From Trichoplax adhaerens (taxonomy: Eukaryota > Animalia > Placozoa), in assembly GCF_000150275.1 (NCBI RefSeq), contig NW_002060944.1, positions 7,826,735 to 7,890,734 of the forward strand: a stretch of 64,000 bases of DNA, in the 5' to 3' direction. The notes beneath the pieces were generated by a model. The model saw only the letters and a program-made list of their open reading frames with translations. It searched no databases and had not been told where the DNA came from. Shown one piece after another: positions 8,166 through 52,899 of this stretch. Made by a program: the position numbers and the translations under genes. Each line of letters starts with the position of its first letter. The stretch's first letter is position 1.

Positions 8166-11100
8166 ATGATAAAATTCATTATTAAGCTTCAATTCTACGT
8201 GCTGCTTTACTCCTTTTCCAATTATGGTAAGACTTAAAATTTTATGATCGCATTCCTATTTATTAACTCTGTTACAGCAATCTTATTCTGTAACTGATTA
8301 ATTTACCAAAAGGTTAATTTAAATTGAAAAATTCTCTTAAATTTAACCTCCATAAATATAGACTTTAAGTTTTACTTGCAACAATGTTACCACTGTGTAG
8401 GCAAACGCAAAATTATAAGTATAGTAAATAGATCAATTGATCTGCATCAACAGCAGTTTTGTAAAGCAAAACCGCGAGTAGAATAAGGAAAATGTTGTGT
8501 TTATTTATAAAGTTGCATACTACGCACTATTATTACAAATTTAAATTTGCAACGAAGAAAAGTAAAATGCCCACTATCAGGTTTATCCTCCTAACATCTT
8601 CCTACAGTACGAGACTCTAATTGCCGACGATCGGAGATTGTCAGGAGGAATAGAACTCCACTAGTCTCTCTAGCACAAAACTGAATCCAAACTTGATTGA
8701 AAAATCAGTCAATTCATAGTAAATCTACATCAAGATTAATTATAATTATCAGATTATAGATAGTACTATACGTCTATCTAGTTATCTATTAAAAATACGT
8801 AAAATGCCGTAGATAAATAAATACTAACACATTTCTAGATAAGTTATCTCACGGAAATTATATCACGACAGTTATGCAAATATTACTACACAATACCGCT
8901 ATTATCATATTATCATATTATTGCCTTAAGTATACTATTAATTTCAAAGATTTTAGTAGAAATACGGATAAAATGTTATAATAATGTAATATACCAGATA
9001 AATCGGATCGAAAGACGTTTGTTCATTACGCCCCTAAACTATTCCTAAATCTTTAAATATTCTATATGCTTAGTACTAGTTACAATCTTAACTGATTGAC
9101 AGCGATAAGATGGAACTCCATCCGAGGATTTTATTCGTATTAATAATGATTTACAATATTCGATATCATCGTTTTTCATGTCCATGATGATTTTAAGCTT
9201 GAGGATATTATAACAATAATTTGCACTAACCTTTTCAACTTGAATCACATTACATCAATGTAGGTTACAGTGTTATACACTGTAATATCTAGATTAGAGT
9301 AGAAATATCTATGTTAGGATAATTTTGTTGATTTACCCTTGTTCTAATAGTTTCTAATTTAGATATATGATGTTTAAATATAGCACTAGCGTTTATGTGG
9401 ATATATATAATATAGATACAGCCTACTGAAATTAGAAGTTTAATTAGGAAATCGAGAATAAACTTCTTACAATTTAAATCACTGTGATTGTAACTTACTT
9501 ATGGTAGATTGTAGATTATCATAGAAATGTTCCGTGATAGAATATATTGTAGTCTGACAATTTTGTATTAGTCATTCGATGTCTATGTTCCGTAAATTCT
9601 CTTGTCTTCATTAGGTAGCAGTAGATAAAATTAGCTTCTGATTCATTAGCAGGTTTAACTTTAGTATTACTAACTAGGATGCCTTTGCTATTGCAAAAGA
9701 GTATTTAAATACGATATATCGTATAATAAAGGGAGTTCTTAAGATTAGTGTTAAACATAAGATACGAGGCGTCTAAGTCTTTTTGTAGTCTACTAGTCTA
9801 AGAAAAGTGTTCCTAAAAGAGTTGATATTGCTCCCTGATACGTGGTTTAAGGAATCGACTTATTGATCGTACGTTATGTTACCTTGTTGCAAAGCTATTT
9901 TGTAACAATATACGACACCACTGCTATACTTTCTAGGTATACAAAGTAAAACGCCTGATTGTGCAATGTATTGCACTTGCCAAAAGGAAAGGATGGAATG
10001 CCATAGCTCTAATTTATATACCATGCCAACTGTAATAGCTGAAACTCAATCGAAGCTTATAACTTTGTGAGAATAAAAGGATATAAGACATAATAAGAAA
10101 TACTAGTTATTAATCATGACTCTATTTTTTTACCTAGATCTTACATTACTATATAGCTTCTTTTTAACAATATCTCTTATATAATTAGAAAAATTCTAGG
10201 AACGGGAATAAGAAAATTATCGAATGCGAGCTTTTTATCCTATCAACGGCTACGCAATCTGTAAAATAACTTCCATCCTCCTTTTAATATAAGGAATTAT
10301 TCTATAAATAATAAGAATTTTAATAAATTTTCGCATATTTTAATAGATATTTGGAGTTTAATAAGATTCAATCAATTGAGGAAGGTTCTTTTATTGGCTT
10401 GGAAAGATTAACTAGACTGTAAATCAGTTGATAAATCTATTGTATATGTCGAATTCACTCTTGACTGATTAAAGTGTTCTATCCGTTAATACATCTGCTT
10501 GATTATTAAAATTCTTGAATTATCTTTCTTATTAAACTGATAAAACTAAGGGATAATTTTGTACTTTTATGTGCATTAGCGATTTAACTGGCAACAGAAT
10601 TAGCATTTTATCCCAAAAGATGTTTACTGGATTGAAGAACCTCCAGAGATTGTAAATTGGAGATTTTACTATCGTTTTCGTTTTTATTACCAAAAATTGG
10701 GGGAAAATTTCTGTTAATATATTCTAGAAGCTTTACTGTAGCGTAAAAAATCAAAATTAAAATTTGATTTCTTAATATCATGTTTCTATGCAAAAAATTT
10801 CATTAAGCGAAAATATATCCGTACCCATGATAATCACTAATAAACTACCAATTTAGTCATTTAGTTATTTTAACCATTTGACAATGCTAGACGATTAATA
10901 TGCTATTTTTAGTTGTATGCTTCAATGCAAATAGGTGGAAAGTTTATCGATAACAAGTAGTTTTGTCTAAGTCTTCATTAACGATTGATCTTGATGTGCT
11001 TATAAATTTATAGAATTTTAAAGGATAACACAATCACTCAAATCTTTGTCGATACATTTAGCCAACTGAAGCAATTGAGATTGGTGTTAAGTATTCAACA

Positions 11101-14100
11101 TAAAATATATCAATGACTATAACTTTATATATCTTTTATTATTATATTTCTCATATAATTTTATTTCTTTCTTAAAAATTGTTTACAGAAACTTAGATGT
11201 TAATCGAATTACAGAAATCAAATCTCGAACATTTTATTATAATAATCAAATATACTTTTTGTATGTATTATAATTGTCATGATGAGCTGAGAATAGTATT
11301 TAATGTCTTTGATATCAAGTGATCCTATATGGATTAATTACTGATTACTGGATTTCTACGTATAATTTCATAAGTCAGGAGTTGCTTTATTCTACTATGA
11401 TAAAGCAAAAATTTCATCGTGGTCGTTACATGATTACATCAGTTTCCAATATTTCAACTAATTATATACCATTATGTCATTTACTGTCGCGTTCAGTTGA
11501 TTCGATTTTAAGTTAGCCACTATTAAAGGTAGAAATTATGCTATTGTGAATTTATTCTACTGTATAATCAGGATTTATCGATAAATTAGACGAGTAAAAT
11601 TACTGATTAGGTATATTATCTAAAAAAATTTTAGTGTATACTTCTAATCCCTGATTGGATTTATTCTAATTAATATTAAGAAGATATTTGTACTAAGAAG
11701 TAACTGTTTGGTTTGATTTCTTAAGTATCAGCACCTAATACTTTTATTTTTTGATTTAAAAGAAACCTCAGGTATAACTTTATCAGGAATTTTACCCATG
11801 CAGCTTTTAGTGAAAACAATGCACTTAAAACTTTGTAAGCAAATTAAAAATCGAAATATTTTTATACTGAACAAATTATATAATATTGTATTTTGAATAT
11901 AGCCTTAATATTCTAGCACGACGCATGTCATACATGCAAATATTAATGCAGTAAAGTGGACTACTAGGTTATTTTAATCTTTATAGCCTACCATTTCTTT
12001 TCGAGCAAGCCTACTTGTTAATCTTGTATAAATTTATCACTGTTTATAAATTAATCTAATTTAGAGCTTTGAATTATTTCTTCTTTCTATTTTAAATATA
12101 ACTAAGGAAAGTAGTTCGATTTATTTTTAACAACTAAAAACTATTCCTTCGTCGTTAAGTAATTCATCAATCCTGTTCTATAGTGAAAATTAACACATTC
12201 CACTTTCAAAACTATCTTAATTTATCATTTATTACGTATTTTTCCTTCAGGCAGCTCAATGACAATTCGATTACTCAACTTCGACCAGGAACAATTGACA
12301 GACTTCAAAATCTAAGTTCTTTGTAAGTTAAATATATATAAGGTTAATGTTATCCTAATCATATGTTAGTTTTATCATTGTTACGGTGATATTTAAGCTG
12401 ATATTATAAATTTCTAAGCCGTCTCAATGAATTATTCGGACAATTAATCTTAGCAGAAATATTCAAGATGATCGTTACAATCGCTAACGGGTTATTCGCA
12501 GTTTTTTAAATCTACGTTGGATTTCTGTCAGAGTCAAATTCAGATAATAACTATTTGTAATACAATCGTAATTTTATTAGAGTACATTAATGCAGAAATG
12601 AATATTGATGTATTATTTCAGCAAGCCATTGTTATAAATCCAGATTTTTAACGAGCAACTTAAACTGCAACTAATCTAATATCAGGCTTATTTTCCTTGA
12701 TAATTGCCTACAGTATGACTCAATACTCATGATCTCTGATAATTATTAGGAGGCGATAGTAACTATATATCTCTTTCGAAGTAAACTATAAACTCAAACT
12801 CAATTGAAAAACCAACTAATTTATAGTATAATTAAACAAAATGTTAATTATCAGTATTTAGATAACATAAAATTCCGCTAATATCTATGTAAGAACATTT
12901 AAAACGTCATAAATAAATCGTTACTAGTGCATTCCTAAATAAGTTACCTTACAATAACTATGTCTTAGCCGCTATATAATAGTTTATATTGACTCGAAAT
13001 ACCCACATTTTCTTGATCATAAAACCCTGATTGCTGGTTTATATAAGTTAATTTCCCTATAAGTATTCTAAAAATAAACACAGTGTGTATTTATTACATT
13101 CCTAGGTATATAGGAGGGAAGCATTTCACAAGATTTAAGGCTGACGATTTAAAACAATTCAAAAATTTAAAATTATTGTAAGTTCACTATCAGTAGTAAA
13201 TACTTCTTTTGATTTTGAATAACTTTGAACAAATAAGTATGCAAATTATGGTAAAATCACTAATTAAGTTGGACTATTTTACCGAATAAGTAGGTAAATG
13301 AAGTATTTAAAATAGTAATAAATTGATAGAATATTATTTACGTTCTTTTTGCCTGGTAAATATATTGAAAGGCAGTCTACGCACTCTTACCCTGTAATAT
13401 ATATGAAACAACATTAGAACATTTAAATCCGTTGCATATTTACTTAGTGATGCTTAATGGAATAATTGTTACCATTTTTAGATTATTTGTTTAAAATTTT
13501 AAATTATGATCAATTGGTTGCGGTAGTGCACATAAGTTCATTATAATAATTATCGATTTCAACACTAGTTTCGTCACGATAGTGTCCTTGTGTAATATGC
13601 AGTAACTTTATGAAGGACTTATCAAATCAGAATAGAGTATAGTTGTTGCTAATACTACATAATAAAAATGGCTGAAACTAATATGTAACATCTTGGACAT
13701 GATAGATACGTCCAATTTGGAAATTTTTCTTCTCCTCGGATCAACTTTCAAGCATTTGGCAATTTACGTGCTTTAAGTTTTTTGTTAGTAGCTAATAGAT
13801 CTGCGCAGAAATTATTCAATAACTGCATCAAGCCATAATATAGGACAAATAAATTGTCGATTTTTAAATTATATTTTAGAGCTTAAAATAAATTTTCTGT
13901 CAATGTCAAATACGCAGATTGCGAATTATTTTTTTAAATCTTTGGTATTTAGATTCATCAAAGCAATTGATAATGGGATGGTTACGATCACCTCGAGTGC
14001 ATTTTCAATGAATCCAAATTTAAGAATACTGTGTGTATTAGAAAATAAAATATATTCAGTCTAAATTTAAAAAGTTGCTGTTGATATATTAACTTAGTTT

Positions 14101-17100
14101 TTACGAATTCCTTAATTTTAGTTCATCAGTAGTGTTGTCTATTGAATTTTTTAAGCTCCTGATATCGAGCATGTAGTCACATTTACTTTGAATATAATTA
14201 ATACCGATTATAGCTTCTACAAAGTTAAATATCAGAAATTAAACAATATTAAATACGTTTGAACTTTCGAAGTGTACAACTGGCATATGCTATAACGTGC
14301 TTTTACTTTAATACAAAAAATGCAATCTTATCGCTAAATTCTATGATTCATACTTCACGATGTAAATGGAATTCTGACGCTACTAATAGCGTAATTGTGT
14401 TAAATAGAATCTCGATTTGACATTTTTTATATGTTGCTCTAGTTTTATAGAATATTGCTATGGTGTTCGGTATATAGAGAAAGGAGCTTTGGATAAATTA
14501 AAGAACCTTAAGTTCGTGTAAGTTTCTTACTCAATTTGTTTCGAGATTGTATTTCTTGCATACTTATTTTAAGCAATATTATAGCAATATCATATACACA
14601 CAAGTGGAAAATTTACCAAATGGTCTATTTAGTGAAAAACCGAAATTGGCAAAGTTGTGAGTTGACTCTCTTTTTACAGGCACAAAAATAATATTTCTAT
14701 TTTGATATGCCTTGATCTAGCAATTTCTTCGAGATACGAAAGTGAATTTAGCAAAATAAATCTAGGGAGTTAATAGCTTAGTTGAATGTCAGAATTTGCA
14801 GCTAGTATTAGAATTTCGGCATTCTGGTGCTTAGAAAGAGATTCTAATTTGGGATTGATAGTCAATCATTTAATTTTTATATTGTAGAAAGCTACGGATG
14901 AACAGCATTAGAGCAATACCTTATGGACTTTTTAATGGCTCAACAGCAATTCGAGAAATGTAAGTTCTCACCGTAGCGAGTTATCAAAGGTCTTAAAAAT
15001 AGTTATCTGCGAAACATTATAAATTCACTGTAGTAAGTATTAATTTCTTTATTTTATGCTTTAATTTTATTTTTATTGTTGGTAAAAAAATTTAAATCTG
15101 CATCGTATTTACTGTAGCTAATTCTATGCCCAATCAAAACTATTTTTATTAAGAACAAATAAAAGAAAGAGAGCACGTATATCATGTTTTCTAGGTGAAT
15201 GGATGCAATTTCGCTGTACCTAGATTTGCAATAATCTTGTATTGATTTCCGCTAATTGTAGTAGTATAGCAGGTGGCTAATAATAATAGCAGGAGACTAT
15301 TACTCGGTCACTACAAATGTGCAACCCAGTTTTAAATTACTCTTTTAAGGGTTCTGCATAAAAAATCGAAAGAAATCATATTTGTCCAGTTATAACCGGT
15401 TAAAGTATTAAAATATCTCACTCAGAACTTTTTCAAATCCAGCGAAGCCTAAATAAACTCAGATTATGTCTCAATCACGTTTACAATTCAAAATTATCCG
15501 GAGTAAAACTAGATTCTACTCTCGTAACCTCTCACCTAGCATCTCTAATACACCGTACTTAGTTTAGGACCTTAGTCACAGCCAAACACAGATTTGAAAC
15601 CTAGTTAAATCATTTTATTACAGAGATAACGGGCGCTGCTAAGTAACTCCGATGACAACTCGTCTTTAATTACTTTAGTATCTGACTTATATACCTGTAT
15701 ATCGCTATTTACAGATTTTCGTGTAAGGAAATATCAATGAAAAATTTAATAGATAAGTTACTTGACCGAATTCGGTACAATCTCTATGCTAAAAAATCAT
15801 AAATTACTTAGACTGCTAGCACTATTTATGGTTCTAATAAATTTCGAAGCTCGCATTGACGTTCTTATAGAAGTATAGCCAAATTACTAACTTTAGGCTA
15901 GTAAAATCATAATACTACATCAATCACTCATTGTTGTTGATATCTCTAACTTTCATTACACCCACTTATTTCTCGTGCCGAAATACATCCTACTCCAAAA
16001 CTATTGCAAAAACTATAGCGCTCTACTATTGTGGTACTAGTACAGCAATTATCCTTTGCATCCTCTTATTGTCAAATAAATACGAAAATTTATTTTGATA
16101 ACAATATCTAGTTAAATAGTAATCTCCTAACTCAAATGACGAGCTTACTTTCAGCTTATTTAACAAAATAATATTGAATGTAAGCTATGTGATAATACTT
16201 GTATGCAGTGATCATAAATTGAATAAATTTCATGTATAAGAAAATGTCATCGTTTTGGCTCGTGTACTAAAATCTGAAATAATATGCATTTATGTAGGGA
16301 CTTGTATAAGAATCGAATTGCATTGATCCAAAATGGAGCGTTTCGAGACTTAGCCAATTTGAAGTATTTGTAAGTAAATTTTAATAAATTTGCTTTCGTG
16401 CTAATTATTGATAATATCAATCAAACAAGGTTGATCATTTATTTACGAGAATATGTACAATTTATTATTTATCAATTTTCATTTTCTAAGATGGTATATT
16501 TAAAGTAATGTGAGACTACGAATTTAGATAGTAAGTTGTTGACACATAATTGATGATATTGCGATTTAGATACTTGAATAGTAATAACATCAAAACCATT
16601 GGCATGGAAACTTTCGCTGGCTTAACTAACCTTCAGCGTTTGTATGAATTTAATAAATAAGAAATATTATTTTACTAATTGATAATTATTATAATGCCCG
16701 TATTTATATTAAATTGCGTATTTGCTAGAATTTGCTCATCTTAGTAGAAATTATATAAGAAATTGACGGTAATTTACAGTACGACGTATTAATGAAATAC
16801 CCATCTGTAAATATGCTTTACGTTAATAGTATCTGATATTAGTATTCTCATTTCTGATTAGAGACCTCAATCATTTGCTAATATAAATTTCATCTTACTA
16901 TAGCTTAACTTCTTTATGGCGAGGATATAGTATACTTTGGTGTACTTCATAAAATCTATTATTTACTTCTATCGCCATTACATATGGACTTTTTTAATTG
17001 GCTTATTGCTTACGTTATGAATATATATTTTGATGTGTTGATATGTACGCGGTCGATATTTACATTTTACGTAAACATTAAATTAATGAGATGGTTTACT

Positions 17101-20100
17101 TTATAAACATTGCCGTAGCTTAATAGTAGTCTCATTATAGGAGGTTTTCAGGCCGATTACATTGTCGTTTTGAATGTAGAACCGCCGTTGTCCATTTCTT
17201 ATAATTTCATACTTCTTAGTTACAGAATTATTATGTAGCTTAAAAATTTCATTCCAGTCGCATTAGTATAATTTAACTATCTTCTTACATTTTAAAATTT
17301 AGAAAGTTATCTTCCAATCAAATCCCTCAATTGGTTAATAACACTTTTTCTGTGCTATCTTCACTTGAAGAGCTGTAAGTCTGGTTCAAATATAAATATT
17401 ATAGTAAGAAACTTTGAATAAAATTATATTTTTTGGATTGCTGAGATCATGCTTCATGTTAAATGGAAAATTTAGGCTGTCACCTAGCCAGACATTAAGA
17501 TGTTTTATTTTCATTATTAATAGTGAATTGTCTAGTAACCTTATTGAGATTATTGAATATCATGCATTTACTGGCTTGATTAGTATCAAGATTATGTAAG
17601 TGGTAAATTGATTTTAAATATAACCTTATTTCATCGTCTGAAGCTATTATGAGAGCAACGACGATTTTAAAAAATAATAGATGTCTTGGTTAAATATGCT
17701 CGAATAGTAGGGTTAATAACTTTTGAATTATAAAATCATAAAATGTTATGACATATATTAGAGCTCTTTCAAGTAATAACATCAGCAGGATTGAATGGCA
17801 AACTTTTGCAGGTTTTCCTAAGTTGGAAACGTTGTAAGTATATCTTATATAATCTTGGTAGCATTACCATTTAATACTCATTTTGCAAATAAACTTGGAA
17901 AGAATTTCTAAGGAGTAAACAATATATGTTTAAGTGAGCAAATCATTATAAGATTAGATTATATACTGATTACTACCTTCATAACGCACTAGCCTTTGCA
18001 TTACTTATAAGGTATTTAGATAATAACGCCATAGACAGCATTGAAACTGGAGCATTTGATGGCTCAAGTAGATTAAGAGAATTGTAAGTTCTGCAGATTA
18101 TTGTCGTATTTTGTATCACAGTGAAATTAAGTTTGTGAATTGTCATACTCATATAAATTAAAATTTAGATGGCTACAGGGAAATAATTTGATCATTATAA
18201 GCAGTGGTATGCTATCGGAATTAAATTATTTACAGATCTTGTGAGTATCGTTACAACTATAATTTTATCAATTTGAATTTAACTAAAATTAAATATCAAA
18301 CGGAATAAGTTCAAGTCCTATTTTTATTATCGTACGTGCTTGTATCTCTATGTGAATATTTCAGTCAAATGATAGTCTTAAGGCCAGATATATAAATATT
18401 TTTTTAGAATAGTACTACTGTGATGAGTTAATTGAGATTATACTAGGTATTATAGTGGATGATTTATCTAATTTATTATCTTAGACAATTATCCGACAAT
18501 CAAATAAGTCATTTAGATAATACAAGCTTAAATTCCCTAATTCATCTGAAGCTGTTGTAAGTAGCAATCCGACATATTTAACTAGAAGGGTATCATGATT
18601 TCTATAGGCAAAAGATTATAACTGAATTGACTAGTGGTTATACGGTATTTAATACGGGTGTTATAGTTACTTGTGAAGTACAGTATATATAGCTCATTAT
18701 TTAATAGCATTTATGCTTAACTGGTAATGTGTTTATTCCTTAGGAATTTGGCCAACAATAGACTTGCGAGTCTTTCTGCCATTGCCATGAACAGTTTAAC
18801 TTCTCTAAATGTCTTGTAAGCATTAAATATATTGATCAATCTTGTAGTTATGATGAAGTAGATTTAACAGTACTAGATAAATGCGAAATGTATAACATCG
18901 ATACAATATACTGTCATTTCTAGTTTATAACAATTTTGTTGTATGAATTTAATATATCATATATAACATGTTTGTCTAGATACTTGGATGAGAATGGACT
19001 AAAAGAATCTACTTTTATTCAAAAATTACGTTTACCTAAGCTGCGTCAATTGTAATAGGATACTTAATTGTTTTAATGTCAAATTACTCTGAAAACTATC
19101 TTATATGGACGCTGATTTATGATTTGCGATTGGTCTTGTTTTCTCTTTGGAAGATATTTAAGAAACAATCAGATTAGGGTTTTGGGACAAATTGTAATAG
19201 ATGAATTATACCAGTTACAGGCTATGTAAGTGCTGCTTGACAAATTATAATTACATCCCTAAATTATCATTTCTAGAGTATAAGTGGAACTTAAATTAAC
19301 CTTATTACAAAGGCTTGAGCTTTAAATTGCATCACGGATGTCGGTTGGCTACTCACCATTTCAATTTCGTTATTTCGTTTATAGAGCGTTAGATGGCAAC
19401 TTAATTGCCAGTTACGATAGTATTTTATCGACTCATAATATTAAAAAGATGTGAGTAAAGACTACATTTTATATGCTTCCTTACTTTTATAAATTCTATT
19501 ATAAGGTCAATTCAAGCTGTATGTTTTTTCATCACTACATAGTATTGACAGACATACATAATATTGTTATTTCATATCTAACTTTTCTTACCATTATTAG
19601 ATCGTTATCCAGGAGTAAGATTAGTAACCACTACCGCCAATTGATGAATATTTCCTTAACCTGTCGTAAACTGTATGAAAATTATAGTACACAATAGAAA
19701 GAGATTGAAAGTTGCACATATATCGAACATAGTTTCTTCCATTACAGATTTCTTGATATTAACTTAAATAAGGATTATTATTCAATAACTTTTTATCGAA
19801 AAGTTGTTGAATGGAATAGATTGATTGTAACAATCATTGGCAATAACAAATATCGAAATATATTGTCAATTGCCATTTAATGGTACAGCATCTAGGAGTA
19901 AAGCTAATATATCGTACTCTTGATGCTATAGGGATCTATCGCACAATTTTCTCTATGACTTACCTCAATTTAATCCTCAAGATCAAATAAAAATGTTGTA
20001 AGGCTACTTTTGTTTTTATCAATCAACATTGACTAGATTTTAAATTGTTGAAATATGATATTTAACATTATTGCTTAACGCAGGTAAGTTTTAGTCCATA

Positions 20101-29871: not shown

Positions 29872-30052
29872 GGTTTCCTTAATTGTAACTTTAGTGATTA
29901 GCAGTTGATATGTTAGTAATTTTTAATTTAGGATTTGACAGACCAGGATAGTAATTGCCTATTAGTTTAACAGGGTTGTATCTATCACCTCCAAGATTAT
30001 TAAGATTTAAAGTACAATTTCTAAGTTTAGAGGAAATATCTTAGTAGGATAG

Positions 30053-39000: not shown

Positions 39001-42000
39001 GATTGTTAATCATGCATTTTCCTATAATTTCTATACTGTAGATACCTACAAATGAATAAGATTAGAGTAATACCAGATGGAATTTTTAATCATTCAACAA
39101 GAATTAGTAAAATGTAAGTTGCTTTTTCAAATAGTACTTGTAATGTTGTTAACGAACTAATTATTAGCGTAACTAGCTAAGTATACCTATGGTGGAAATA
39201 AAATTTATTGAAATAGTTGAAAATGGATTACGATCCTAAAGCATGGCCGAAGCATTAACATTTCGCTCTCGAATATCCTTCAAGAGTGAAAATTTAAGTC
39301 TATGACATGTTGTCAATTCTAAACTTGCTGTAAATTTGTAATGGATATGTATCATATCTGAGAGAGTAACCTTTATCATATAGAATCTTTATATCGTCAC
39401 TACTAAGGCATACAATGTAATGGCTCATAGCGCCAATGTTCATCTCCATTTATGTGAATAAGTTTTATAACTTTATTCGTCCTTTAAAATTGAATGCTTC
39501 TGTGATTACAATAACTCTCTACACGTACAGTGTCGTGTTATCATGTCTTTACATGATAAGCGATAATACCTAACATTTGCGGTACTTATCAGAGAATTTA
39601 CATGTTTTCTTTGATTGGAATAGATATCTAAATGATAATCAGTTAACTAAGCTAACAAGCTCCATTTTTGCTCATTTATCAAAGCTAACTATAATGTAAG
39701 TTATAAAACGAAATATCTTTATGTAAAGTAAAAGATTGAAATAAATTTCAATCGTAGGGGACGTTACAAATATTTAACGTTCAAATTAAAATTCGAAACA
39801 ATTTTATGTTTATATAGTGATTTATATAATAATCGAATTGCATATATCCAAGACGGAGCTTTTCGGGGCTTAGCGAAGTTAAAATATTTGTGAGTTGTCA
39901 TAAAATGTCACAATTTCATCTTGCTAACTAATAATTACTCGTCCAGCTTCTAACGAAATCGAATAATATTATTAATAGCTATTCGTTAGTACATATTATT
40001 CATTATATTACCTTATCATGATTTAAAGATAAGTATTTAAATCAAGTCGGACCTTTATTTCTCTGGTCACAATTTAGGTTATTGGACAGAAACAATATCA
40101 AAAGTATTGATATGAAAATCTTTACTGGTCTAACCGGCCTTAGACAGTTGTATGATTTGTTCTAAATAGTAATAACTGTTTAGCAATATGTTATCAATGC
40201 TTATATTTATTGAAAGTCAACCAGAATTGTTTTAGCAGCAAAAGCTATGCTACATATGAATGCTATATTTTTAAATTTTTCGTTACTTTATTTACCTATT
40301 GCTAGATGTATTATTAATACATGCTTAGACAGAAGAATTCCACGTAGCATAGACAGATAGTTTAATTCTTAGGAATCAGCATAACAGACACATATCAAAG
40401 ATTAATAATATAATTTTAATTTTATAGCTTAAAAATAATTTAATAATGATTTCATTATCGAATGTCATTCTGGGGAAATTATATTGTTAGACCGTCGCAT
40501 TTCGAATGTAGAACACTGTTTTCATTTCTTATACGTTTATATTTGATCTCTATAAATTTTACATTCACCGTAATTAACAGATTTTAAAGTAAATATGTGT
40601 GTTTCAAAGTAGAATATTGCCCTAATTAATTGGCTCTTTTATTTTGAAATTCAGGAAGTTATCCTCTAATCGAATCCTTAAATTGGTTAATAGAACTTTT
40701 TCCACGTTCATTTCACTAGTAAAACTGTAAGTTTATTGTACGGATAAATCTAAATAATATCATAGAATAATATCTAACAAAAATATTGCTTTAAAATTGT
40801 AAAGATATATGTGATATTAGATTAAAAACTCGAACTATTGTCAATCAGCTATTGAGCATCATTTTATATTAACAGTGAATTATCCAGCAATCTCATTGAA
40901 GTTATTGAACGTAATGCATTTACTGGCTTGATTAATATTGAAACTATGTAAGATTTTATATGATTTAGCTTTTAAAAAGATGTTCGTTCATTTCAGTTTA
41001 AACAAAAAATTTTCAATCACAGAAATAATTAAATTTCTTGATTAAATACAAATGTATTGAGAACATTACCTCACAATATGATTCATGATAGAGATCTGTC
41101 AAGTAATAATGTTAACAAGATTGAAAGTCAAACTTTTTCCAATTTATCCAAATTAAAGACATTGTAAGTATATCTATATTACAATCACAGTTATCATTTT
41201 CTCGATTCAATATTTCCTTTGCTATTGCGAAGTGAATATTAAATTGTATCGTTAGACAGAAAAATTACTGATCGAGCTACATATATGTATCTTAGTCTAT
41301 CATAAGATAAATTCGCCTTTGCAATTATATTTTCGGCCTTAACTTAACTCTTTATGAAATTTTTTGCAAGCAGAAAGATAGGCAAGATATTGACGCTTAG
41401 CTGTTTTACGAGTACTTATTTCATACAATCTTAATAAAATTTGGCGGCATTCTTTACTGTGCTATATTCCTTTCAGAGTTAATAAGCTAGATACTTAGAG
41501 CATGAGTATATGACAGCAGTACCAAGGATTTACCAATCAGTTTTTAGGATCGTTCGCCTCGAGGAAGGCGCACTGTTAGCATCTTGATCAGCAGGTCTAA
41601 ATTATTAAAATAAATTTACAAGTATTTCTAGAACCAAATCGTTTAATCTATAAAAAGCATGATAAGAGTTTGTTTACGAAAGGTTATTTTGTGGCTTTCA
41701 TATTTTTGAATTAAACGATGCATCCGTTCGGTACTGATTAAAACCGTGTTGAATCTCTAATCTTAGCGTAATACTTGAAAGATTCTTAGATAATAATGCC
41801 ATCGACAATATTGCAGTTGGAGCATTTAAGGGATTAATTAGATTAAGAGAATTGTAAGCTCTTAAGATTTTGAAGTATTTTCGTCTTATATTTCGAGATA
41901 TGTCTTTTTGTAAATTAATATGTACATTGAAATTTAGATGGCTGCAGGGAAATAATTTGGCATTTATTAATAGTGGTATGCTGTCATATTTAAGCAATTT

Positions 42001-45000
42001 ACAAATCTTGTAAGTATTATTAGAATAATCATTTTCTTAAGTCAAAATTAAATGAAATTAGATATAAATGAGATTAGATATAAATGAGATTGGATAGATA
42101 TTTTCATTCGTATTAGTGTCTATTTCCGTTTGTTACTCAAATTCTTAAAAGATATGTATTAGTTATACGAACATTTATTAACGGTACTTAATATTTACGA
42201 GAATATAGACTGCAATAATGATGAGCTGTTTAAGATTAAATTAGTTATTTATAAGTAATTTATTCCTAATTTGCTAATTTAGGCAATTATCTGACAATCA
42301 AATAAGCTATCTGGATAATGACAGCTTAAGTTCCCTAATTAATCTTGATATGTTGTAAGTATTAAATTGTTACATTTTATTTGTGGGATACTTAATATCG
42401 AGCGATTGCATTTAAAACTAATACGAGATATAAAGTTTATTGTCTTAACTATCGAATAGAATTCAAGTTTAATAGGTATATATTTATTGCTTAGAAATTT
42501 GGCGAATAACAGACTTACTAATCTCTCCTCCGCTGCAATGAATGGTTTAATTGCTCTAAGTACCTTGTAAGTATTATAAAAATATTTACTGGCAATGTAA
42601 TAATTGTTGAGTAACTTTGCTATTGCTTACAGTTAGCAGCATAATTTATTCTGTAACATCATTCCTTTGATACTGCTAATTTGATAAGGTACCAATCTTC
42701 TCTCACTTTAATTTCCATTAAAATGTGATATAATAACTAGGTATTTGGACGAAAATAGGCTAAAACAATCTAACTTTATTCAAAATTTACATTTACCAAA
42801 ATTACGTCAATTGTAAGCGCGTACTTAGCTGTACGAAAATCAAAATATCTAAATTGAAATTATCGTACAAGTACTGGAGTTAAAGGTTTACAATATTCTA
42901 TTACTTTTGAAAGGTATTTAAGAAATAATGAGATTAGAATCTCGGGACAAATTGTGATAGACAAATTATATCAGTTAGAGATGATGTAAGTGTTAATAAA
43001 TAAATGATGCTAAAGTATATTTGTTTTATTCTTTCTTATTACATCAAAGTATAATGTCAACTGACAGGTATTACAGATATGTCTTAAAGTTTATTACAAA
43101 AGTCAACAACTAATTTTAATCTCATTTCCTCATATTTAGTGCATTAGATGGGAACTTAATATCCAGTTATGATAGTATATTATCATCTCAAAATAGTATC
43201 ATTAAAAACATGTAGGTTAAGATAGAATTACATCTGCTACTTTTAATTTAAATCTAAGCCTTAATGATACTTATAATTCTGTTCTACTATAGCCCTAAAC
43301 AAGAAATAACAGGCTTTAATTATGCTGGAATATAGAACTTTGTTATTTAATGTCTTCTGCTTTTACAATATTAGATCGTTATCCAGGAGTAAGATTAGCA
43401 ATCACTACCGTCAGCCGATGAATATTTCCTTGAAATGTCATGAGCTGTATGAATTCCATACTTAAATATTGAAAAAATTTAATATATTTAACTTAAGTTT
43501 TCTGTTTTACTTCTAATATACTGTATATGTAATTGATGTATCGCTTTAAAGAAGTGTATTTGAAGTTTGTTTGGATGATATATTACCTAATCGTAGTGAT
43601 GCACCCATACTTGATTAAGTTGATCACTATATTTGATATAACTGAATTAAAATTATTAGATGTTATCGTGTTGCTAATATTAGAAATAATCCTAGTTCTA
43701 AAATTAGTCATTGCTGATTTTCGATTATTTTCGAATATCTGAATATGGTTTGTGACCTATAAGAATAGATGTGCTGTAATTGTGAAGATATCCAACACCT
43801 TGCGATGTTGGACTATTAACTTAAGAGTAATCATACCTCTTAAGTAAATAGATTTCTACCGTAGAAATGTTGCTTATTTATTTGAAGAGAATAAAGAAAT
43901 TGACTATCAATCATATTAAATCTCTTTTGAGATTGGTAAACCTTATATATACGTACTGTATGTATTTTTATATTGCAGGGATTTATCATATAATTATCTT
44001 CATCATTTACCGCAATTTCATGGGCAAGATCAGATAGAAAGGCTGTAAGGCTACATTTATTGATATAAGTAAATTCTTTTTATTATTTCTAGCCAGCTAA
44101 ATTGCTGGTTCCTTGAATAGTATTTATTAATATAGCGCAGACTTTGCTTAATTATTATCATGTAATTCGTGGTCTGTAACCAGATCAACAGAAATTACGT
44201 GGTTACTTTAGTATTAGTAGATGAGCGTAGCACGGTGGAACAAGGTAGCGTAACAATCAGATTATTTTGATACAAGGATTCCATGTATTTACTTGCATAA
44301 AATTATCTTCTATAAAAGGAATTATTCTATGAATATATGAATTTAATCTGTTACTATAAAAGTAGATTTTATATTATTTTAACACACTGCTTATTTTATG
44401 TCATCTAGAAATTTATCCTATGATAGGATATCTTTGCTTTCAGCGGACCGTTTATCAAGTTTAAGTTCATTAAAATTGTTGTAAGCTTATAAATTCTCAT
44501 AGAAGCTAGGATTAACGCCATTTGTTGCACCTAAATTTAAGATAGTTTCATTTGTCAGTGATCTAAGAGGAAACAAAATAACAAATATTCCAGTTGGATT
44601 TTTTCAAAGGTTAACAAGTCAGAAATATATCACAGATATGTAAGTTGGAAAAAATACTTAAATTTAGCTGTTTGTCGAATGCCAGTGATAGGAAGAGCTA
44701 ATACATCTATCTCATATAGCAATTTATCAACGAATCGCCTTGTTTTTTTTCATGAAGATACATTAAGTTCATTAAGTGAATTAAATTACTTGTAAGTTTA
44801 ATGGAAATATTGTTAGATTCGCAGCTACGAGTATTTTAAAGAAAATAGTACGTAGGTGTTGATGATGTACTAAATATAATTTATACTTTTACTCTTTTTG
44901 ATGCTTTTCAGACAAATTGGTAGTAATCTTCTTGATTCTATCCGATTTTTGAAGAATGCTTCAAGTTTGATAAGTCTGTAAGTCAACTTTGTATCTTAAT

Positions 45001-48000
45001 GTCACGGTACGAACTACCATGAAGAAATAGCCATCTAAATTTGGTTAATATAATATAGTGATATTATATTACAACTAGTTACTTACAATAGGAATTACTC
45101 TAATTATAAATGTGTTACAGTAAATTTAATGCTGTGTTGCAATGTGCACTGAAATGATTCTGTGAATGGACATATTGTAGTCCGACTGTGAAAAATTAGT
45201 TAGTAGATGTTCTCACCTAAGTATTTTTATAAGAGGACTCATGAATGTTAGCTGCTGTAGATGGGTATATAAGCCCGTCAGATATTTGAATAAAGTAGTT
45301 CTCAATTGTCTAGTTGAGTTTAACGTAGAATCAAAGGCGTCTTAATTCTTGTGCGATAGTAAAGGGATACTGAATCCCGGAGACTATAGTAATTTAGAGA
45401 TTTATTTTACGTTATCCTTGTCACTAAGCTGGTTTGTGACACCCATCTCTCTATCTTTGAATTTTTTTAATGTGCATGATATTATAGTGCATTGCTCTAA
45501 ATTTTACTCGTAGTCAAGATACAGGGCCGTCTTTCCTAACACGCTTTTTACTTTGTCTTATACAGGACGTTAATCAATAATAATATTGATCGCCTTGACA
45601 AAATTATTCTGGACGATTTGAAAAAATTGCAAAAACTGTGAGTTAATTAATGATTCTTTCACTTAACAACTTTAATAAATAGCCATATATTTTATATTGA
45701 TAAAGAATGGTGATTTATAGAATTTACTATAGTTTGCACAGCATTTGTTTAGTTTTCATAAATCTCCAGCATTATGATTTCTTTGCGATACATTTTAGAT
45801 AAATAAATAAAAATAAACTAATCCATCGATAATTTCACCTTAAAGATCTGTGCAACAAAACTTTATAACAAAATTAGAATCTGGCTTATTCAAATCGCTG
45901 AGAAACCTTACTAATCTGTAAGTTTGAAAGATCTTCTATACTTGCTACGTTATTTTTGGTCATCAAATCTAGTTTATTTTTGTCTTAATAAAATACTGCT
46001 GGAATTACTTTCGCACCCATTTTTTTGGACCATGCTATTCCTTAAATCTTAAATTATTTATTTCTATGGATCTTACTGCCAGTAATTGAGCTATAACTAC
46101 TCATCAGAGATTGTTATCAGCAAGTATTAACGTGAATATTTTGTGTTCTGTGCATTTAGCATTTTAAATCTATTTAATTTACCCAATATGCTAATTTCAG
46201 CAAGATATTTTTCGGGTATGAATAGCTTAATATGTTGTAGCTTAGCCCATTTCTTGGTCTGCGATATTGATTTTAAGGAAGTACTAATCCTGTATAAATA
46301 ATGTAGTGTCTTGAAAAGTCATGCATATAATTTATGATTCGTGAGCACTATTTAAGTTCAAGCTAGTATCATTCCATTCATTTTTATTCAATTTATTGTG
46401 CCATCCTGAGACTTTTATATATTTCTCTTTTGTGGCACCAACTATCACAGATATAAAAAATTTGGACATTTTTCATTATTCTAGATACGAAATCTATAGT
46501 TATGATTGTAATCGTAAGATAATTTTGATATCAATGGATCTTTTAGTTGGATTGTTCCCTTAATAGAATAATGTAGGCCATACTAAAATCATTTTGATAT
46601 AGATTTTGCGTTATTTATTGTAATTCTTGCATAATAGAGATCTCTCATCAAATAAGATCAACATCATCGAAGAGAATGCTTTTGACGGACTAGATCAACT
46701 TCAACGCCTGTAATTGTCTTGCTTATACATGATCTAGATATATACCATAAAATGTTTAAAATTTCGCTTTCCAAAGTATCTAACAATTTACTGTAATAGA
46801 CAATAGTATTTAGACTCTACTTTTCTGTCTAGTCTAATCAGTCTTCTTATTTCTATTTTAAAGATACCTGGACCATAATCAAATATCGGACTTGACATTT
46901 CTACGTTCTATTAGTTTAAGAAATTTACAGTTAATGTTAGCAATGATCTAGGTCAATCGTCCGTTATAGCTGGAGTAAATTGATTTTTTCACTCGCAGAT
47001 CGCTAAGGGAAAATCAGATAAATGAATTACATGGCCGAGATTTTAAGACTGTTCTTAGTTTAACGGCAATGTAAGTTTATCGACCAGTCGATGGTAACCT
47101 TGTTTCGCGTTTTTCAATCCTAGATTTACTTTATTATAAAATTTTTTACTTTATTTATCTTTATAGCTATTTGGATTATAACAATATTTCAAGCTTAATG
47201 GATACAATTTTTAATCAGCTTTACAAACTTCAAACTTTGTAAGTGACGGTATTAGTTAGAGTATAGGTCTCTCATTTTATTTGTGTCTTATTCCACTCTT
47301 ATATTTAATTTATTTTTGTCTAAACTATTTTTTCCTTATTTCTAAATTAGCTCCATAACCCACAATAGAGTAAAATCATTAATCTGCAATCGTTATTATC
47401 ATCAAATACGTCGAATTTCTCTAAAGGCTATGTAAAAATGACATAAATATATTTTTGTGATAATATGTTAAAGGACTATGTAGATTGGCAATAAATTTCT
47501 CCATTTTATTAACATTTTGCGGGCATACCATTTTTTCTGGTTAAGGTACCTGACATATAATGATATTACATTCATATCAGACCAATGCTATTCACTTTTT
47601 GAAAATCTGTTGGGTTCGCTGTAAGTTTCATGGGCTTACATGTATAAAATGATGTTGCATATTTAATTTTCAGAAGAATGAATTATCTAAAAATATTTCA
47701 CATTTGTGCTACGATTAATATCTTAGTGGTTCATATCTATAATTTGTTATTTTAAAGCATATTTTCTAAATTCCAGGGATATTGGATTTAACAATCTGGC
47801 TCAAAATATTCCTGAATTCGCCTATCGCATATTCCGCCGCGATTTACAACTGACTCGGCTGTAAGATTAAACCTATTTTCCTGTTAATTTAAAAATGGTT
47901 TATGTCATGAACTTGTTTATGAAATTATTACGGTATAACTTTTCTGTAGCAACTTGTACATGGTTATGATATGATAACTTATGCAATATTATAGTTATAA

Positions 48001-51000
48001 CGGTTTATCCATGACGTTACATAATTTCTATACTGTAATGTAAGATCGTATGATAAGCAAAGGTTAGAGAGGACAGGCCTGACAGCAGGCTCATAGCGTG
48101 CTTAATTTTCTCCTTTCAAATCTCGATTTTGTAATATGGATATTGGAGATATATCGTTGATTCAATCTTAAAATTAAATATTTTATTGATTTAATTCCCT
48201 CTTAAAATTAGATGGTATCAAAATTGATAATAATTACATTATGAAAATCTTATTTCGTAGTGGGATCAGTGGAAATGGATTTACTCACTTATGGCAGGCT
48301 TATCGTAATGGTTTTTTCAAAAAAGAGATCGGATTGTAGGCGACTCTATTTGATTGATAGATTTTTAAAATTTCTAGTTATACAAAGTCTTATTGATATC
48401 TCAATTTTTCATTCTATAATTTCTTATTTATAACTATTGATATCAATTTTGTTTTAGAGACATTAGTTATAACAATTTACCAGCAGATGAAGTAAAAAAC
48501 CTGATTGGCAACATCTTTCCTCTTTACATTTGTCGTTACTTCAGAAGGATTGGAAGAGAAAGTATATTATTATACATGTCTCGTTGCTGGTCTACGTATT
48601 TGTAAGTTATCTTTATTAGACTTTCTACAAAGAGTCACAGAATTTCTAGAATATATAATAAAATTACGGTAGCAAATACTTACGAATACACTCTCACTTA
48701 CAGAGGTTTAAGTGGTTTAAAATTACGGCAACTTCCAGGCGACGGTTTACGATCTCTAGAAGGCTATATTTATGCCTTGTAAGTAGAAATCAACAAGTGA
48801 TTGAAATAATTATATGATAGAGTAAATAATACTTGATTTAAAAAAATTTTAGCCGGTAAGATTAGGAATTACTATATATGTACTATTATATAGTGACAAA
48901 TACTTGACGACGCCTCTATATACTTTCAAATTGGTAAAAGTTACAATAAATATAGCAACATTTTACCATATTTTACATATATTCAGATTACTATTAGAAA
49001 TAACATTTTACAGAGGACTATTGGCAATCCAATTTAGAAATGCCTGCAGTATTTGCGTAGATAATGTTTCTACCATTCAGAGTATAGTAAACTAACAATA
49101 TCCTGATATATGAATTATATTTCTATTTTTGCCTCTAACTTTAATAGTAACGCGGCACTCTACTGCATGTGCTTATCTGTGCTCTAGCGTAGAATCTTGC
49201 AATACAGTTTATAGCTTTGAGCTACTAAATCTATCTTAATATAAATATAGAAAGTTACGCTATCGTATATCGTACTAAATATGGCTAATAGTTTACAATC
49301 CCAATACTAAGTTACGTTTCAAACATATATTAGAGCTATTATAAAAATCAATACAGATAAAAATATCGATGCAATTACTCATCTAAGGTGCACTTACATA
49401 ACGCTACTTTGATTTGATTATTCGACCTATGAAGCAATGCAACAGAAGTCTACCGTAGTAAAATTGCAGTTCACAGTAAACATCTATTTAAGTTCTAGAT
49501 ATCTGGCTAGAGCAACAATTTGGAATCTTTACAATCTTAAATTCTATTATAGCATAAAAAAAGCAAGCATTAATTTGTAGCAAATGCGAATTGTATAATT
49601 TAGGTATTTGAATGATAATCAACTTACGGAATTTGATGTCGAAGATATTTTTTATGGAAGTGATAATAATATGCGAGAACTATGAGTCGAAAAAAAGATT
49701 GTAATAGTTAAAATAGCGACTGTAAGCTCTACCTTTAGCTTACATGGAGCAATTAACGAGTTGGTGGCATCATTTTCTAGCTATTATTTTACGTTTAGAG
49801 TTCTATATGAATTACTGTTTTAATTGCATTATAGCCAACTCTCCGGTAATAAGTTGAAAACTATCACAAATAGGCAGAATGTTCGCTTCTTAAAATTACA
49901 GCTATTGTAAGTTTATAAAAAGGATGATAAAGACTAAATTAGGGGTAAAAACATTTTACTGCTTTAATTATTTGGCTAATAGTATTTTTGAATATTTTCC
50001 TTTATTAATAATATTTCAAGTCTGCAGCTAATATATTTTTGCATTGCAAGGCTCACGCTGAAGGGTGTAATATTGATAGCGTTTCTCATTTCACTTCAGA
50101 AATATATCTGATAACGCCATCTTAAATTTTTGCAATAATAATTGGCAGAAGTTTGCTCCGATGTTGGAAATGATGTAAAACTTGATATCGATACAATTTA
50201 ATTTCACTTTAATTTTGAAAGCTTTATTTTTGAATAATAAACCTAGTTCATTTTCTGAATACACACAGATATGATGCATTTTTGCTTTGATGCATAACTA
50301 ATTATTCTGTATTTTTTATATCCATAAGCATAGAATACGAAAAGTTTGTATTTTTCTATCTAATATATTAAATATTATATGTTGTGAATAGCTATGTTGA
50401 TCGATCAAACATCAAGGTATTAGATTCAAGGTGTTTGCAAAGGTTATCAAATCTTCGACTTCTGTAAGTGCTGGCCTAAGAATTGATTTAAATGTGAATA
50501 GATTTTTGAAATGTTAATTCTATACGGATAGATCACTGAAAGACAATCCACTGACATCAGTCGATGGACAGTCTCTTTATGGGCCTCTAAAATTGTCCAC
50601 CATGTAAGTTTAATTCTGGGTAATTGTTATAGAATTATATTAAACTATAGATATCTATTTTAATGTTACAGAATAGATCGAATCTACTTATTTTTATTGC
50701 AATTTTTACATACAATCTATTTTAATAGTGTATAAATAGATTCATTCGCCTTATTTTTGCAATTTTTATATATAATAAACCATATCTTGCAATGACCGTC
50801 AATGAAGTAGATTACAGTAAACTTGTAGATTATAAATCTATTAGTTTAGATGTCTATTTTATTATACAGTTTAAATTGGTTCTCTTTATTTTAACAGTTT
50901 TATACATATAGCAATCTCTATCTTGCTAGAGCAATAAACGTCAACGAACGAGATTCTAGTTAATTTGTAGATTACAAATCTATTGATATCGATATCTATT

Positions 51001-52798
51001 TTAATTGTACAGTTCAAATTAATTCTCATTATTTTTCCAGTTTTGCTTATATAGTAATCTCTATCTTGCTGGTGCAATGAACTTCAATAACTAGATTATA
51101 GCTAATATGTCGATTGTAAATCCATGTATTGAAACGTACAATGATCACTGCACTTACTCTTTATGATTTTGTTAGCTATCAGCATAGGACTCATTATTTG
51201 CAGTCATCCTTTAACAATTACTTAACTGCCTTAGCACTAGTTATAAGCCACTCTTAGTTATTGGAGCTAGCCTTATTTTCTTTAACAGTAAACAATATCG
51301 ATTGATTAAATACCAGATTGTTGTCGATTAATAATTCCATTGTAAGACAACAATCAGTATTTTGGATATAACAGTTAATTTTAACAAGGAAACAATAGCT
51401 ACGGAATGCACATGTAAGGTTTTTCAGTAACATGATAACTTGCACTTTTATGCAAGACTAATGGCTTTATCTGATCTATTCGAGACTATTATATTACTGC
51501 AAATAGCTTTTACATATAATTGTTGCTTACAATGCTAACTAAATCTTTTAATATTATTACTGTTGGAGTATAGCCTAACAACACGCGACTATTTTTGCTG
51601 TATGGTTCCGGCTAAAGTAACAACATGTCAACCTATAGCTATTGAATTATTATCAAGTTGTCAGCATTTATTATCTCATCTATCCCTACGACTTTATATC
51701 TGGATTGTAGGTGGCGTAGCATTTATTGGTAATATATTAGTATTCTGCTTTCATTGGAAAAATTCATGTAAGGGTCGACCGAAGCAAGTATTTCGCCTAT
51801 TGTTATTTAATTTAACTGTAGCCGATTTTTTAATGTCCATCTATTTGTTTATAATTGCGATCGCTGATCAATTTTATCATAATCATTATGGCCAATATTC
51901 AGAAAATTGGTTAAGGAGTACACCGTGTCTATTAGCCTTTTTCTTGGGTAGTTTATCGAGTATTATGTCGATCTTGATGATGCTGCTTATTAGTATTGAT
52001 CTCCACTTACGTACTGTTGATCCGATCCGTTATCAAAGTCGGAATTATAAGTATAACAGTTTTAGAACTACAATTATTCTATTCTGGTTGTCATGTCTAT
52101 TGTATGTCGGAATACCTACTATTACAAGTGCTAATGCTGCTGGTAATGATCGAGTTTATAAATATAGCAGCATTTGTATGCCAAGCAATGTAGATAATAC
52201 TTATTTTAAAACATGGATTTTAATTATTACATTTTTAACTGCTGGTATATGGCTAACAATTTGTGTATTATACTATTTAGTCTTTATAAAAGCATATCGA
52301 AGTAGTATTTCAGTACAACGTACATCAGCATCAGCAGACCGAAAATTAGCGAGAAAACTATCCATCATATTATTAACTGATTTAATTTCATGGCTGCCTT
52401 ACTATTTTATCATGTTCAAAGTCATGTGTACTAATACCATCGATATCTTTGAGCTAAAATTTGTAATCATACTTGCATTACCAATTAATTCTGCCCTAAA
52501 TCCGTTCTTGTATAGTTGTAATTATTTTACTACTCCATGTTTTTGCCGAAATGCTCAAATTGATAAACCAGTCACAGTTCGCCAACGTAGTAGATCGTCT
52601 GCTTCAGTTCGAGATACTAGCCCTAATCGAACTCTTGCTACTAATCATGGTTATTCCGGTGAAAATAGAGTCCAGAATAATTGTAATAGTTCAAAACGAA
52701 TGAATGCCTTAACAGAGTTTGGTCAATCTGAGACACGTCATAAAGTAATGACGATAAGAAGTAATGTTCAGTCGATGGCTAAAGTTTCAATCATTTAA
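33092..52798 (+). CDS. Giant LRR-containing GPCR (LGR-like) gene B, paralog of A: 49 LRR exons, ~1689 aa; one exon has a non-canonical donor
   Basis: Signal exon 33092-33155 (MEIKHIILLCWYILLCSLCNYG) and LRRNT 34278-34407. LRR exons from 34531 to 50603 are colinear one-to-one with gene A, plus an extra exon 39624-39695. Terminal hinge/7TM exon is 51574-52798 (ORF 51563-52798). Exon 49604-49681 is followed by AT instead of GT. Confidence 0.88.
33474..33915. mobile_element. Solo-LTR-like element, family 2, in gene B intron 1
   Basis: TCTTA|TGTCACAAACCAGCTTCGTGACA...CACGGTAGTTCGTACCGTGACA|TCTTA with perfect TSD; 442 bp. Confidence 0.9.
45000..45441. mobile_element. Inverted near-identical copy of 33474-33915 in a gene B intron
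   Basis: 442 bp reverse complement of 33474-33915 with about 14 substitutions by eye. Flanks CTTAA/CCCAT do not form a TSD. Confidence 0.9.
50620..51130. repeat. Degenerate tandem repeat (~140-bp unit, ~3 copies) in the last intron of gene B
   Basis: Recurring ATATAG.AATCTCTATCTTGCT..GCAAT, GTAGATTA.AAATCTATT and GATATCTATTTT..T..TACAG blocks. Boundaries approximate. Confidence 0.6.
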
Positions 52799-52899
52799 AC
52801 TTTGGGTTCATTTCTATTTTTAGTGGAATATTTCCTAACGGTTATGATATTGTTTAAAGCGCTATTTAGTAGTAAACCCCATAATTGATAAAATTGGTA

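Follow-up and report, generated by a model that had tools for sequence, protein, structure and literature searches.

In the placozoan Trichoplax adhaerens, 46 G-protein-coupled receptors bearing leucine-rich repeats (LGRs) have been described, 41 of which are placozoan-specific and carry "unusually high" numbers of leucine-rich repeats (LRRs) (Hauser, Koch and Grimmelikhuijzen 2022, PMC9545775). According to the same study, the placozoan-specific receptors possess a family-specific cysteine-rich hinge and sit outside types A, B, and C of the family, and no type B LGR was found in T. adhaerens. Here, we describe a 64,000-nucleotide stretch of the T. adhaerens genome (contig C1413:7826735-7890734 of a 105.6-Mb assembly comprising 1,414 contigs, ~29% GC), referred to below as the window, which contains two complete colinear LGR genes (A and B) and the start of a third (C), arranged in tandem on the + strand. 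Judged by their sequences, A, B, and C are members of the published placozoan-specific expansion, and much fuller gene models can now be given for them. The locus probably consists of three old tandem paralogues and one relic of a seven-transmembrane domain (7TM) from this expansion, and the encoded proteins are likely to be receptors for fixed ligands rather than variable sensors.

The placozoan-specific LGRs (e.g., Tadh-LGR-15) are known from the same species and share with A, B, and C an LRR ectodomain joined to a rhodopsin-class 7TM, a high number of LRRs, and the family hinge; however, the worked example of the published study has 34 LRRs, whereas the three genes described here have 48-49, and the study includes neither this tandem array nor its one-repeat-per-exon structure, its selection pattern, or a change of the DRY motif to DLx (PMC9545775). 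Type C LGRs (RXFP1/2, GRL101) provide the best 7TM match, and the RXFP1 hinge can be aligned with that of the genes described here, but they contain LDLa, which RXFP1 needs for activation, and only ~10 LRRs, whereas A, B, and C lack LDLa and carry D-L-x in the third transmembrane helix (TM3); moreover, the placozoan-specific LGRs are not part of type C on the published tree. Type B LGRs (LGR4-6) provide the best whole-molecule fold match, have a solenoid longer than those of types A and C, and may resemble the genes described here in acting independently of G proteins; they differ in their weak 7TM similarity (E 1.6e-9), their 17 LRRs, and their hinge. In type A LGRs (FSHR, LHCGR, TSHR), the 7TM is similar (E 1e-23 to 1e-25) and the concave face of the LRRs binds a protein hormone; these receptors differ in their LRR number (9-11), in their long hinge, which contains a sulfated-tyrosine region, and in their retained ERW motif. 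Finally, Toll-like receptors (TLRs), variable lymphocyte receptors (VLRs), and plant LRR receptors are likewise long LRR solenoids, and TLR3, TLR8, and TLR13 superpose on the LRR part of a structural model of gene C. Unlike these proteins, A, B, and C possess no TIR domain, kinase, or glycosylphosphatidylinositol anchor, their output is a 7TM, and neither concave hypervariability nor somatic assembly was found in them.

Structure and transcription of the tandem receptor genes

Exons were located by scanning the window for open exons bounded by AG...GT, from which a hidden Markov model (HMM) of the LRR exon was built; this model gave 80 matches on the + strand and 11 weak matches on the - strand. 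Exons conserved between A and B were then paired and linked into a colinear chain by dynamic programming. This chain comprises 49 colinear internal pairs (the N-terminal LRRNT cap exon and 48 LRR-type exons) followed by the exon encoding the hinge and 7TM. The window contains only three long open reading frames, all 7TM-like and located on the + strand, and each of them matches Pfam 7tm_1. When the exons of gene A are joined, a frame of 4,872 nt with zero internal stops is obtained, and all of the splice sites are AG/GT. These are thus confirmed as real tandem genes for giant LRR-7TM receptors. An earlier note, made from the sequence alone, had proposed two complete colinear genes with 48 and 49 LRR exons and a third gene starting at position 60520. 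The exon-pair chain and the open joined frame bear out the former proposal, and the signal exon, the LRRNT exon, and colinear exons that continue past the end of the window bear out the latter. In particular, gene C is colinear with 47 of the 48 LRR exons of A, and its hinge/7TM exon (396 aa) lies approx. 17 kb beyond the window end on the same contig.

A, B, and C follow a common plan: a signal exon, an LRRNT exon, LRR exons, a four-cysteine hinge, and a single 7TM exon, together encoding receptors with a predicted length of ~1,620-1,690 aa. The LRR-type exons, of which there are 48-49 per gene, are mostly 72 nt long and phase-2 symmetric, and each encodes one repeat. Both the order of the exons and the places of those with odd lengths (66, 75, 78, 81, 84, and 150 nt) are identical in the three genes. 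Each signal exon has a phase 1 end and is predicted to splice in frame to the LRRNT exon (8226->9937 in A, 33155->34278 in B, and 60583->63068 in C). Exon 1 of A is homologous to exon 1 of B (both finish with ..NYG), and the frame stays open when it is joined to position 9937; the LRRNT exon of A gives a weak match to Pfam LRRNT (E 0.017, under the cut-off). One double-length, irregular LRR exon of A has homologues in B (48458-48601) and C, where it measures 144 nt. Two cysteines are kept in this exon in A, B, and C, whereas the identity between A and B is otherwise just 0.45; as far as the sequence indicates, the exon looks like a disulfide-bounded loop inserted into one repeat, six exons ahead of the hinge.

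Transcription was assessed in the region 22700-28500, i.e., the 3' third of gene A. Several sequencing runs contained ~0.29 of the words of this region, which is about its exonic share, whereas three runs contained ~0.85 and resembled genomic DNA. Four of the runs containing 0.27-0.30, one per study, were used. In the RNA contigs from these four studies, exons 36-50 of A are connected by an unbroken series of 15 GT..AG joints that begins with 22817->22964 and finishes with 26245->27345. Thirteen of the joints were found in all four runs, while 24670->25195 and 26245->27345 were absent from one of them (X10). The last joint, present in three runs, connects the 7TM exon with the LRR exon immediately preceding it, and thus the LRR ectodomain and the 7TM reside on one polypeptide. 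The idea that they might belong to separate or silent genes fails for A, because spliced RNA joins the LRR exons to the 7TM exon in order. Contig sequence ahead of position 22746 corresponds to the end of exon 21430-21501, and a 2,063-nt contig extends ~1 kb further upstream, which would leave room for approx. 14 more exons. No exon-skipping or shuffled joints were found among the RNA joints of exons 36-50 in the four studies.

In the 7TM exon of A (27609-28279), contigs from several studies also depart from the reference at a few shared single bases (27609 T>A, 27610 A>G, and 27846 C>T among them), which are probably strain or allele differences. Within LRR exons 36-50, nearly no differences were found among the contigs of the four studies.

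Position of the receptors among LGRs

Among solved structures, the 7TM is matched best by RXFP1 (about 3e-29), followed by a Caenorhabditis elegans LGR, LHCGR (3e-25), and TSHR and FSHR (~2e-23); LGR4 reaches 1.6e-9, and receptors other than LGRs reach 1e-9 or weaker. The hinge aligns with that of RXFP1 (C..P..V..C.P....SS..LL), but it also has a CC..P..C.P..C pattern that is invariant in an alignment of 12 placozoan proteins, common to 26 paralogues, and described as family-specific in the 2022 review. In none of the three genes did the 5' region yield an LDLa-like motif or a cysteine-rich open reading frame, and the D.SDE motif is absent from the placozoan models scanned. The RXFP-like hinge and the lack of LDLa, both pointed out in the earlier note, are upheld by the alignment to RXFP1, by the in-frame junction of signal exon and LRRNT exon, and by these 5' regions; the 7TM is RXFP-like as well. 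Since the LDLa module is missing, activation cannot use the tethered-LDLa route of RXFP1.

For gene C, the public fragment of 952 aa was modelled with AlphaFold (predicted local distance difference test, pLDDT, 71); the model displays 23 β-strands at 24-residue spacing that lead directly into seven helices. Searched with Foldseek, this fragment is most similar in fold to full-length LGR4 (E 5e-29), then to TSHR, FSHR, and LHCGR, whereas its LRR part alone resembles TLR3, TLR8, TLR13, and SHOC2.

The search of the species' own genome with the 7TM yielded 104 matches, including more than 50 intact single-exon 7TMs, a scale that agrees with the published count (PMC9545775) and with a large lineage-specific expansion of this family. 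On a 7TM tree, the group formed by A, B, C, and the other T. adhaerens paralogues is separated from the deuterostome and mollusc outgroups with a support of 100. Two proteins from other samples, P0003 and P0006, fall within the same clade (support 100 for the whole), which divides into (C,P0006), with a support of 98, and ((A,B),P0003), with a support of 96. C and the A+B pair therefore have separate counterparts in other samples, and the split between C and A/B predates those lineages.

The highest LRR motif count among public placozoan models, taken as a rough substitute for exon counts, is 37 (RDD40123.1, 1,430 aa). A search across 1.8 billion proteins, judged on its top 150 representatives, returned no LGR outside Placozoa with more than ~20 repeats in one ectodomain. 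The deuterostome relatives that were scanned reach 1,700-2,900 aa, but CUB, LDLa, and C-type-lectin modules account for this size. One scallop protein contains 37 motifs; however, two of its stretches match the 7TM query and a 7TM lies in the middle of the protein, which suggests a fused model.

Selection, receptor output, and competing explanations

Codons of the canonical 72-nt exons were classed as concave (x2, x3, x5, x7, and x8), core (L/N/F), or convex and other, and the ratio of nonsynonymous to synonymous substitution rates (dN/dS) between A and B was calculated by the Nei-Gojobori method (NG86), with a bootstrap on the concave class. The ratio is 0.20 (bootstrap 0.10-0.37) for concave, 0.05 for core, and 0.33 for convex positions; it amounts to 0.22 over all LRR positions (dS ~0.94) and also to 0.22 in the 7TM. 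Amino-acid identities of the concave, core, and convex classes are 0.59, 0.90, and 0.57 between A and B, 0.41, 0.78, and 0.23 between A and C, and 0.40, 0.76, and 0.27 between B and C. The excess of concave over convex identity is +0.17 between A and C (confidence interval +0.09 to +0.26) and +0.13 between B and C, and it persists when the membrane-proximal exons are left out. In particular, the identity at xLxxN positions x5, x7, and x8 is 77, 65, and 77% for A versus B and 48-58% for A versus C, which is above most convex positions. Conservation is highest in the membrane-proximal exons 42-50, where the identity reaches 0.75 (A-B) and 0.61 (A-C), compared with 0.61-0.69 and 0.37-0.44 for the other exons. 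The duplicates are old, because dS is ~0.9 between A and B and saturated against C.

A separate observation concerns the 7TM exon (27345-28446 in A, 51574-52798 in B), in which the A-B dS is 0.43, half of the 0.94 found for the LRR exons; the last exon may have undergone gene conversion, or its synonymous sites may be constrained.

Selection, fixed exon order, old duplicates, and separate counterparts together form the pattern expected of old receptors, each specific for its ligand and kept by purifying selection, rather than of diversifying sensors. It may be envisaged that every paralogue has a fixed protein ligand of its own, probably a large or extended one, which it would bind along the solenoid's conserved concave face, and that the nine strongly conserved membrane-proximal repeats and the hinge relay binding to the 7TM. 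The output of such a receptor might be weak or G-protein-independent, e.g., via arrestin or a scaffold, since the arginine at position 3.50 is replaced by leucine throughout the clade.

This replacement lies in the TM3 motif, which reads DLR in A, DLH in B, DLY in C, DLC in P0003, and DLY in P0006, with identical flanks and no gap. D-R-[Y/F/W] is present in each of the 26 remaining T. adhaerens paralogues that were compared, in two further database hits, and in three of four deuterostome and mollusc outgroups, the fourth of which has DRL; among the sequences compared, D-L-x is thus confined to the clade of A, B, C, P0003, and P0006. Because all five members have DLx and DRY occurs elsewhere, Arg3.50 was replaced by leucine at the base of the clade, and because the 7TM is under purifying selection, Leu3.50 has been tolerated and kept. 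Other activation motifs are intact in the clade, including NPxxY (as NPFLY or NPYLY), the TM2 aspartate (LxxxD), and W-x-P of TM6 (SWLP). Receptors without Arg3.50 often fail to activate G proteins; C5aR2, with DLC, is one such receptor and is not known to couple to G proteins. LGR4-6 signal without G proteins. The loss of the DRY arginine across the clade is a new detail and a modest new lead; as a sequence change, it suggests non-canonical signalling.

It is possible, though doubtful, that A, B, and C are G-protein-independent receptors altogether, i.e., scavenger, arrestin-biased, or scaffold/co-receptors comparable to LGR4-6 and to atypical chemokine or C5a receptors. Such an account overlaps with the favoured one and differs from it in output only. 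It draws on the ungapped D-L-x of all five members set against the 26 arginine-bearing paralogues, on the purifying selection that keeps the change, and on the parallels with C5aR2 and LGR4-6, but the intact NPxxY, TM2 aspartate, and W-x-P are at odds with it, and an arginine located three residues onward in four of the five sequences might compensate for the loss. Moreover, the RXFP1 chain that was aligned has E-K-Y, and thus this receptor class tolerates variation at the 3.50 site. Rather unlikely, and at present speculative, is the wider proposal that A, B, and C represent a conserved placozoan lineage of giant LGRs without classical G-protein activation, whose ~50-repeat solenoid would serve as an arrestin-biased or scaffold-like platform, an independent parallel to LGR4-6 and atypical receptors in an animal without neurons. 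A role as cell-adhesion, matrix, or self-recognition receptors, in which the long solenoid would bind a surface or matrix partner instead of a diffusible hormone, could account for the very long ectodomain and its 17 N-glycosylation sequons, as long LRR ectodomains often mediate cell-surface interactions; the closest sequence relatives are, however, hormone receptors, and this role is distinctly improbable.

The earlier note regarded the array as part of a birth-and-death family of variable immune or chemosensory sensors of the TLR, VLR, or plant-LRR kind, in which concave residues would diversify toward many foreign ligands and feed into a G-protein-coupled receptor. The large, lineage-specific expansion would fit such a family, as would the relic 7TM copy and the decayed exon, the greater divergence of the LRR region (68% amino-acid identity between A and B, as against 82% in the 7TM), and the likeness of the modelled LRRs to the ectodomains of TLR3, TLR8, and TLR13. 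Placozoa are also reported to lack canonical TLRs and to have C-type-lectin recognition domains linked to G-protein-coupled receptors (PMC6321704). Nevertheless, the concave dN/dS of 0.20 is not raised, the xLxxN positions are more conserved than most convex ones, and the exon architecture is fixed; A+B and C are old duplicates, each with a separate counterpart in other samples, and RNA reveals no skipping or shuffling, with exons 36-50 nearly invariant across four studies. The six pairs of exposed xLxxN motifs quoted as differing between A and B are indeed present, but they are a selective sample of positions that are 65-77% identical. Rapid gene turnover or combinatorial assembly of repeats, as expected of variable LRR immune receptors, conflicts with the fixed exon order, the consecutive RNA joints, and a record of losses limited to one relic and one exon. 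Uniformly low concave dN/dS and one-to-one orthology, which the note itself had named as incompatible with variable recognition, largely describe what was found, and we regard such sensors as improbable. Decaying or misassembled genes without function are highly improbable. Although the CT found at the donor of B exon 46 in the reference, the relic adjoining B, and the fragmentary public models (400, 691, and 952 aa) could be read in this manner, gene A has an open frame across 51 exons, is correctly spliced in RNA of four studies, and evolves with a dN/dS of ~0.2, which largely refutes decay for A.

Several points weigh against fixed-ligand receptors as the best explanation, or limit its reach. 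Repeat positions x2 and x3 are as variable as convex ones, and positive selection that was episodic or limited to particular sites might escape notice because the comparison involves three paralogues with dS values from 0.9 to saturated. RNA support is confined to exons 36-50 of A, exon 46 of B has no GT donor in the reference, and the structural model spans 23 repeats at moderate confidence. Literature searches on the function or expressing cell types of placozoan LGRs yielded only the 2022 review and a 2014 LGR phylogeny, with no ligand, cell type, or signalling assay for any member.

Annotated features of the locus and their significance

Coordinates of the annotated features are collected in the table below.

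Table. Features annotated in the 64,000-nucleotide window of T. adhaerens.
Feature	Position	Strand	Description
Gene A	8166-28446	+	51 exons, 1,623 aa
A exon 1	8166-8226	+	start codon and signal peptide; 61 nt, phase 1 end, hydrophobic stretch, GTAAGA donor
A LRRNT exon	9937-10066	+	Cys-rich cap; 130 nt, phase 1 to phase 2; acceptor and frame conserved with B 34278-34407
A LRR-type exons	10189-26245	+	48 exons; 33 of 72 nt, rest 66, 75, 78, 81, 84, 150 nt; phase-2 symmetric
A decayed pseudo-exon	~16108-16179	+	homologue of B extra exon 39624-39695
A double-length irregular LRR exon	24328-24477	+	150 nt; boundaries by RNA joints 24207->24328 and 24477->24596
A 78-nt exon	25195-25272		boundary set by RNA joints
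A last exon	27345-28446	+	four-Cys hinge, rhodopsin-class 7TM, and tail; Pfam 7tm_1 E 5e-23; TM3 D-L-R
Gene B	33092-52798	+	48 exons colinear with A plus extra exon 39624-39695, giving 49 LRR-type exons
B exon 1	33092-33155	+	signal peptide; 64 nt, GTAAAG donor
B LRRNT exon	34278-34407	+	from exon-pair chain with A
B LRR-type exons	34531-50603	+	49; possible 50th at 35876-35950
B exon 46	49604-49672	+	reference CT in place of the GT donor of A; sole usable donor GC, 9 nt upstream
B hinge and 7TM exon	51574-52798	+	Pfam 7tm_1 E 5e-24; TM3 D-L-H
7TM relic	54232-55174	+	copy of B 7TM exon, 5'-truncated (TM2 onward), with stop codons
Dispersed repeat, 647 bp	9264-9910; 29372-29869; 59146-59777		transposon-like, non-coding; in A intron 1 and in the spacers before B and C
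C exon 1	60520-60583	+	signal peptide; 64 nt
C LRRNT exon	63068-63212	+	gene runs past window end

Traces of gene and exon loss are present at two levels. The 7TM relic beside B shares 88% nucleotide identity with 51867-52805, and the LRR-exon HMM found no LRR exons upstream of it; across 1-8165, 28447-33091, and 52799-60519, this model gave matches at noise level only. Within A, the pseudo-exon aligns with the extra exon of B (local alignment score 68) and shows in-frame stops and a 2-nt length change, although its AG and GTAAG flanks are still visible. Its loss leaves the frame of A intact because the LRR exons are symmetric. Instead of the two relics announced in the earlier note, one gene-level relic and one decayed exon inside A were found. 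The 647-bp block was considered as a duplication scar or a second relic and was rejected: it is a dispersed, genome-wide repeat with at least 666 candidate copies in a DNA search of the species' own genome, 40 of which were scored and proved to be 83-88% identical. A second, short repeat (~200 bp, 81% between copies) occurs at 21854-22055, 33472-33681, and, in reverse orientation, 45236-45441, i.e., within introns of both A and B as well as upstream of the B LRRNT exon; it may be similar to a miniature inverted-repeat transposable element. The spacers between A and B and between B and C hold homologous blocks (29283-31032 with 56371-56993), which indicates that whole gene-plus-spacer units were duplicated.

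The CT at B exon 46 (49655-49690) may reflect a strain difference, an assembly error, or the use of the GC donor; the model from Trichoplax sp. H2 reads ..NNMRE at this place, as it would with a GT donor present. Public models of the three loci comprise TRIADDRAFT_53794 (P0153), TRIADDRAFT_53796 (P0004, a partial gene C of 952 aa), and RDD37289.1 (P0001). The last of these, from Trichoplax sp. H2, matches the 7TM of B at 100%, but omits five internal LRR exons and takes its C-terminus from the adjoining relic. Closest among database proteins are the two TRIADDRAFT models and the models from Trichoplax sp. H2, which NCBI names 'G-protein coupled receptor GRL101-like'.

Although placozoans lack neurons and consist of only a few cell types, they possess ~46 LGRs, compared with eight in humans. 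Public models cover 400, 691, and 952-1,270 aa of the ~1,620-1,690 aa of the three genes, and correct full-length models matter for ligand searches and for mapping expression in single cells. The selection pattern argues for fixed ligands and points experiments to endogenous protein ligands. Moreover, the clade-specific loss of the DRY arginine offers a simple way to examine changes in LGR signalling, since nearby paralogues that retain DRY are available for comparison.

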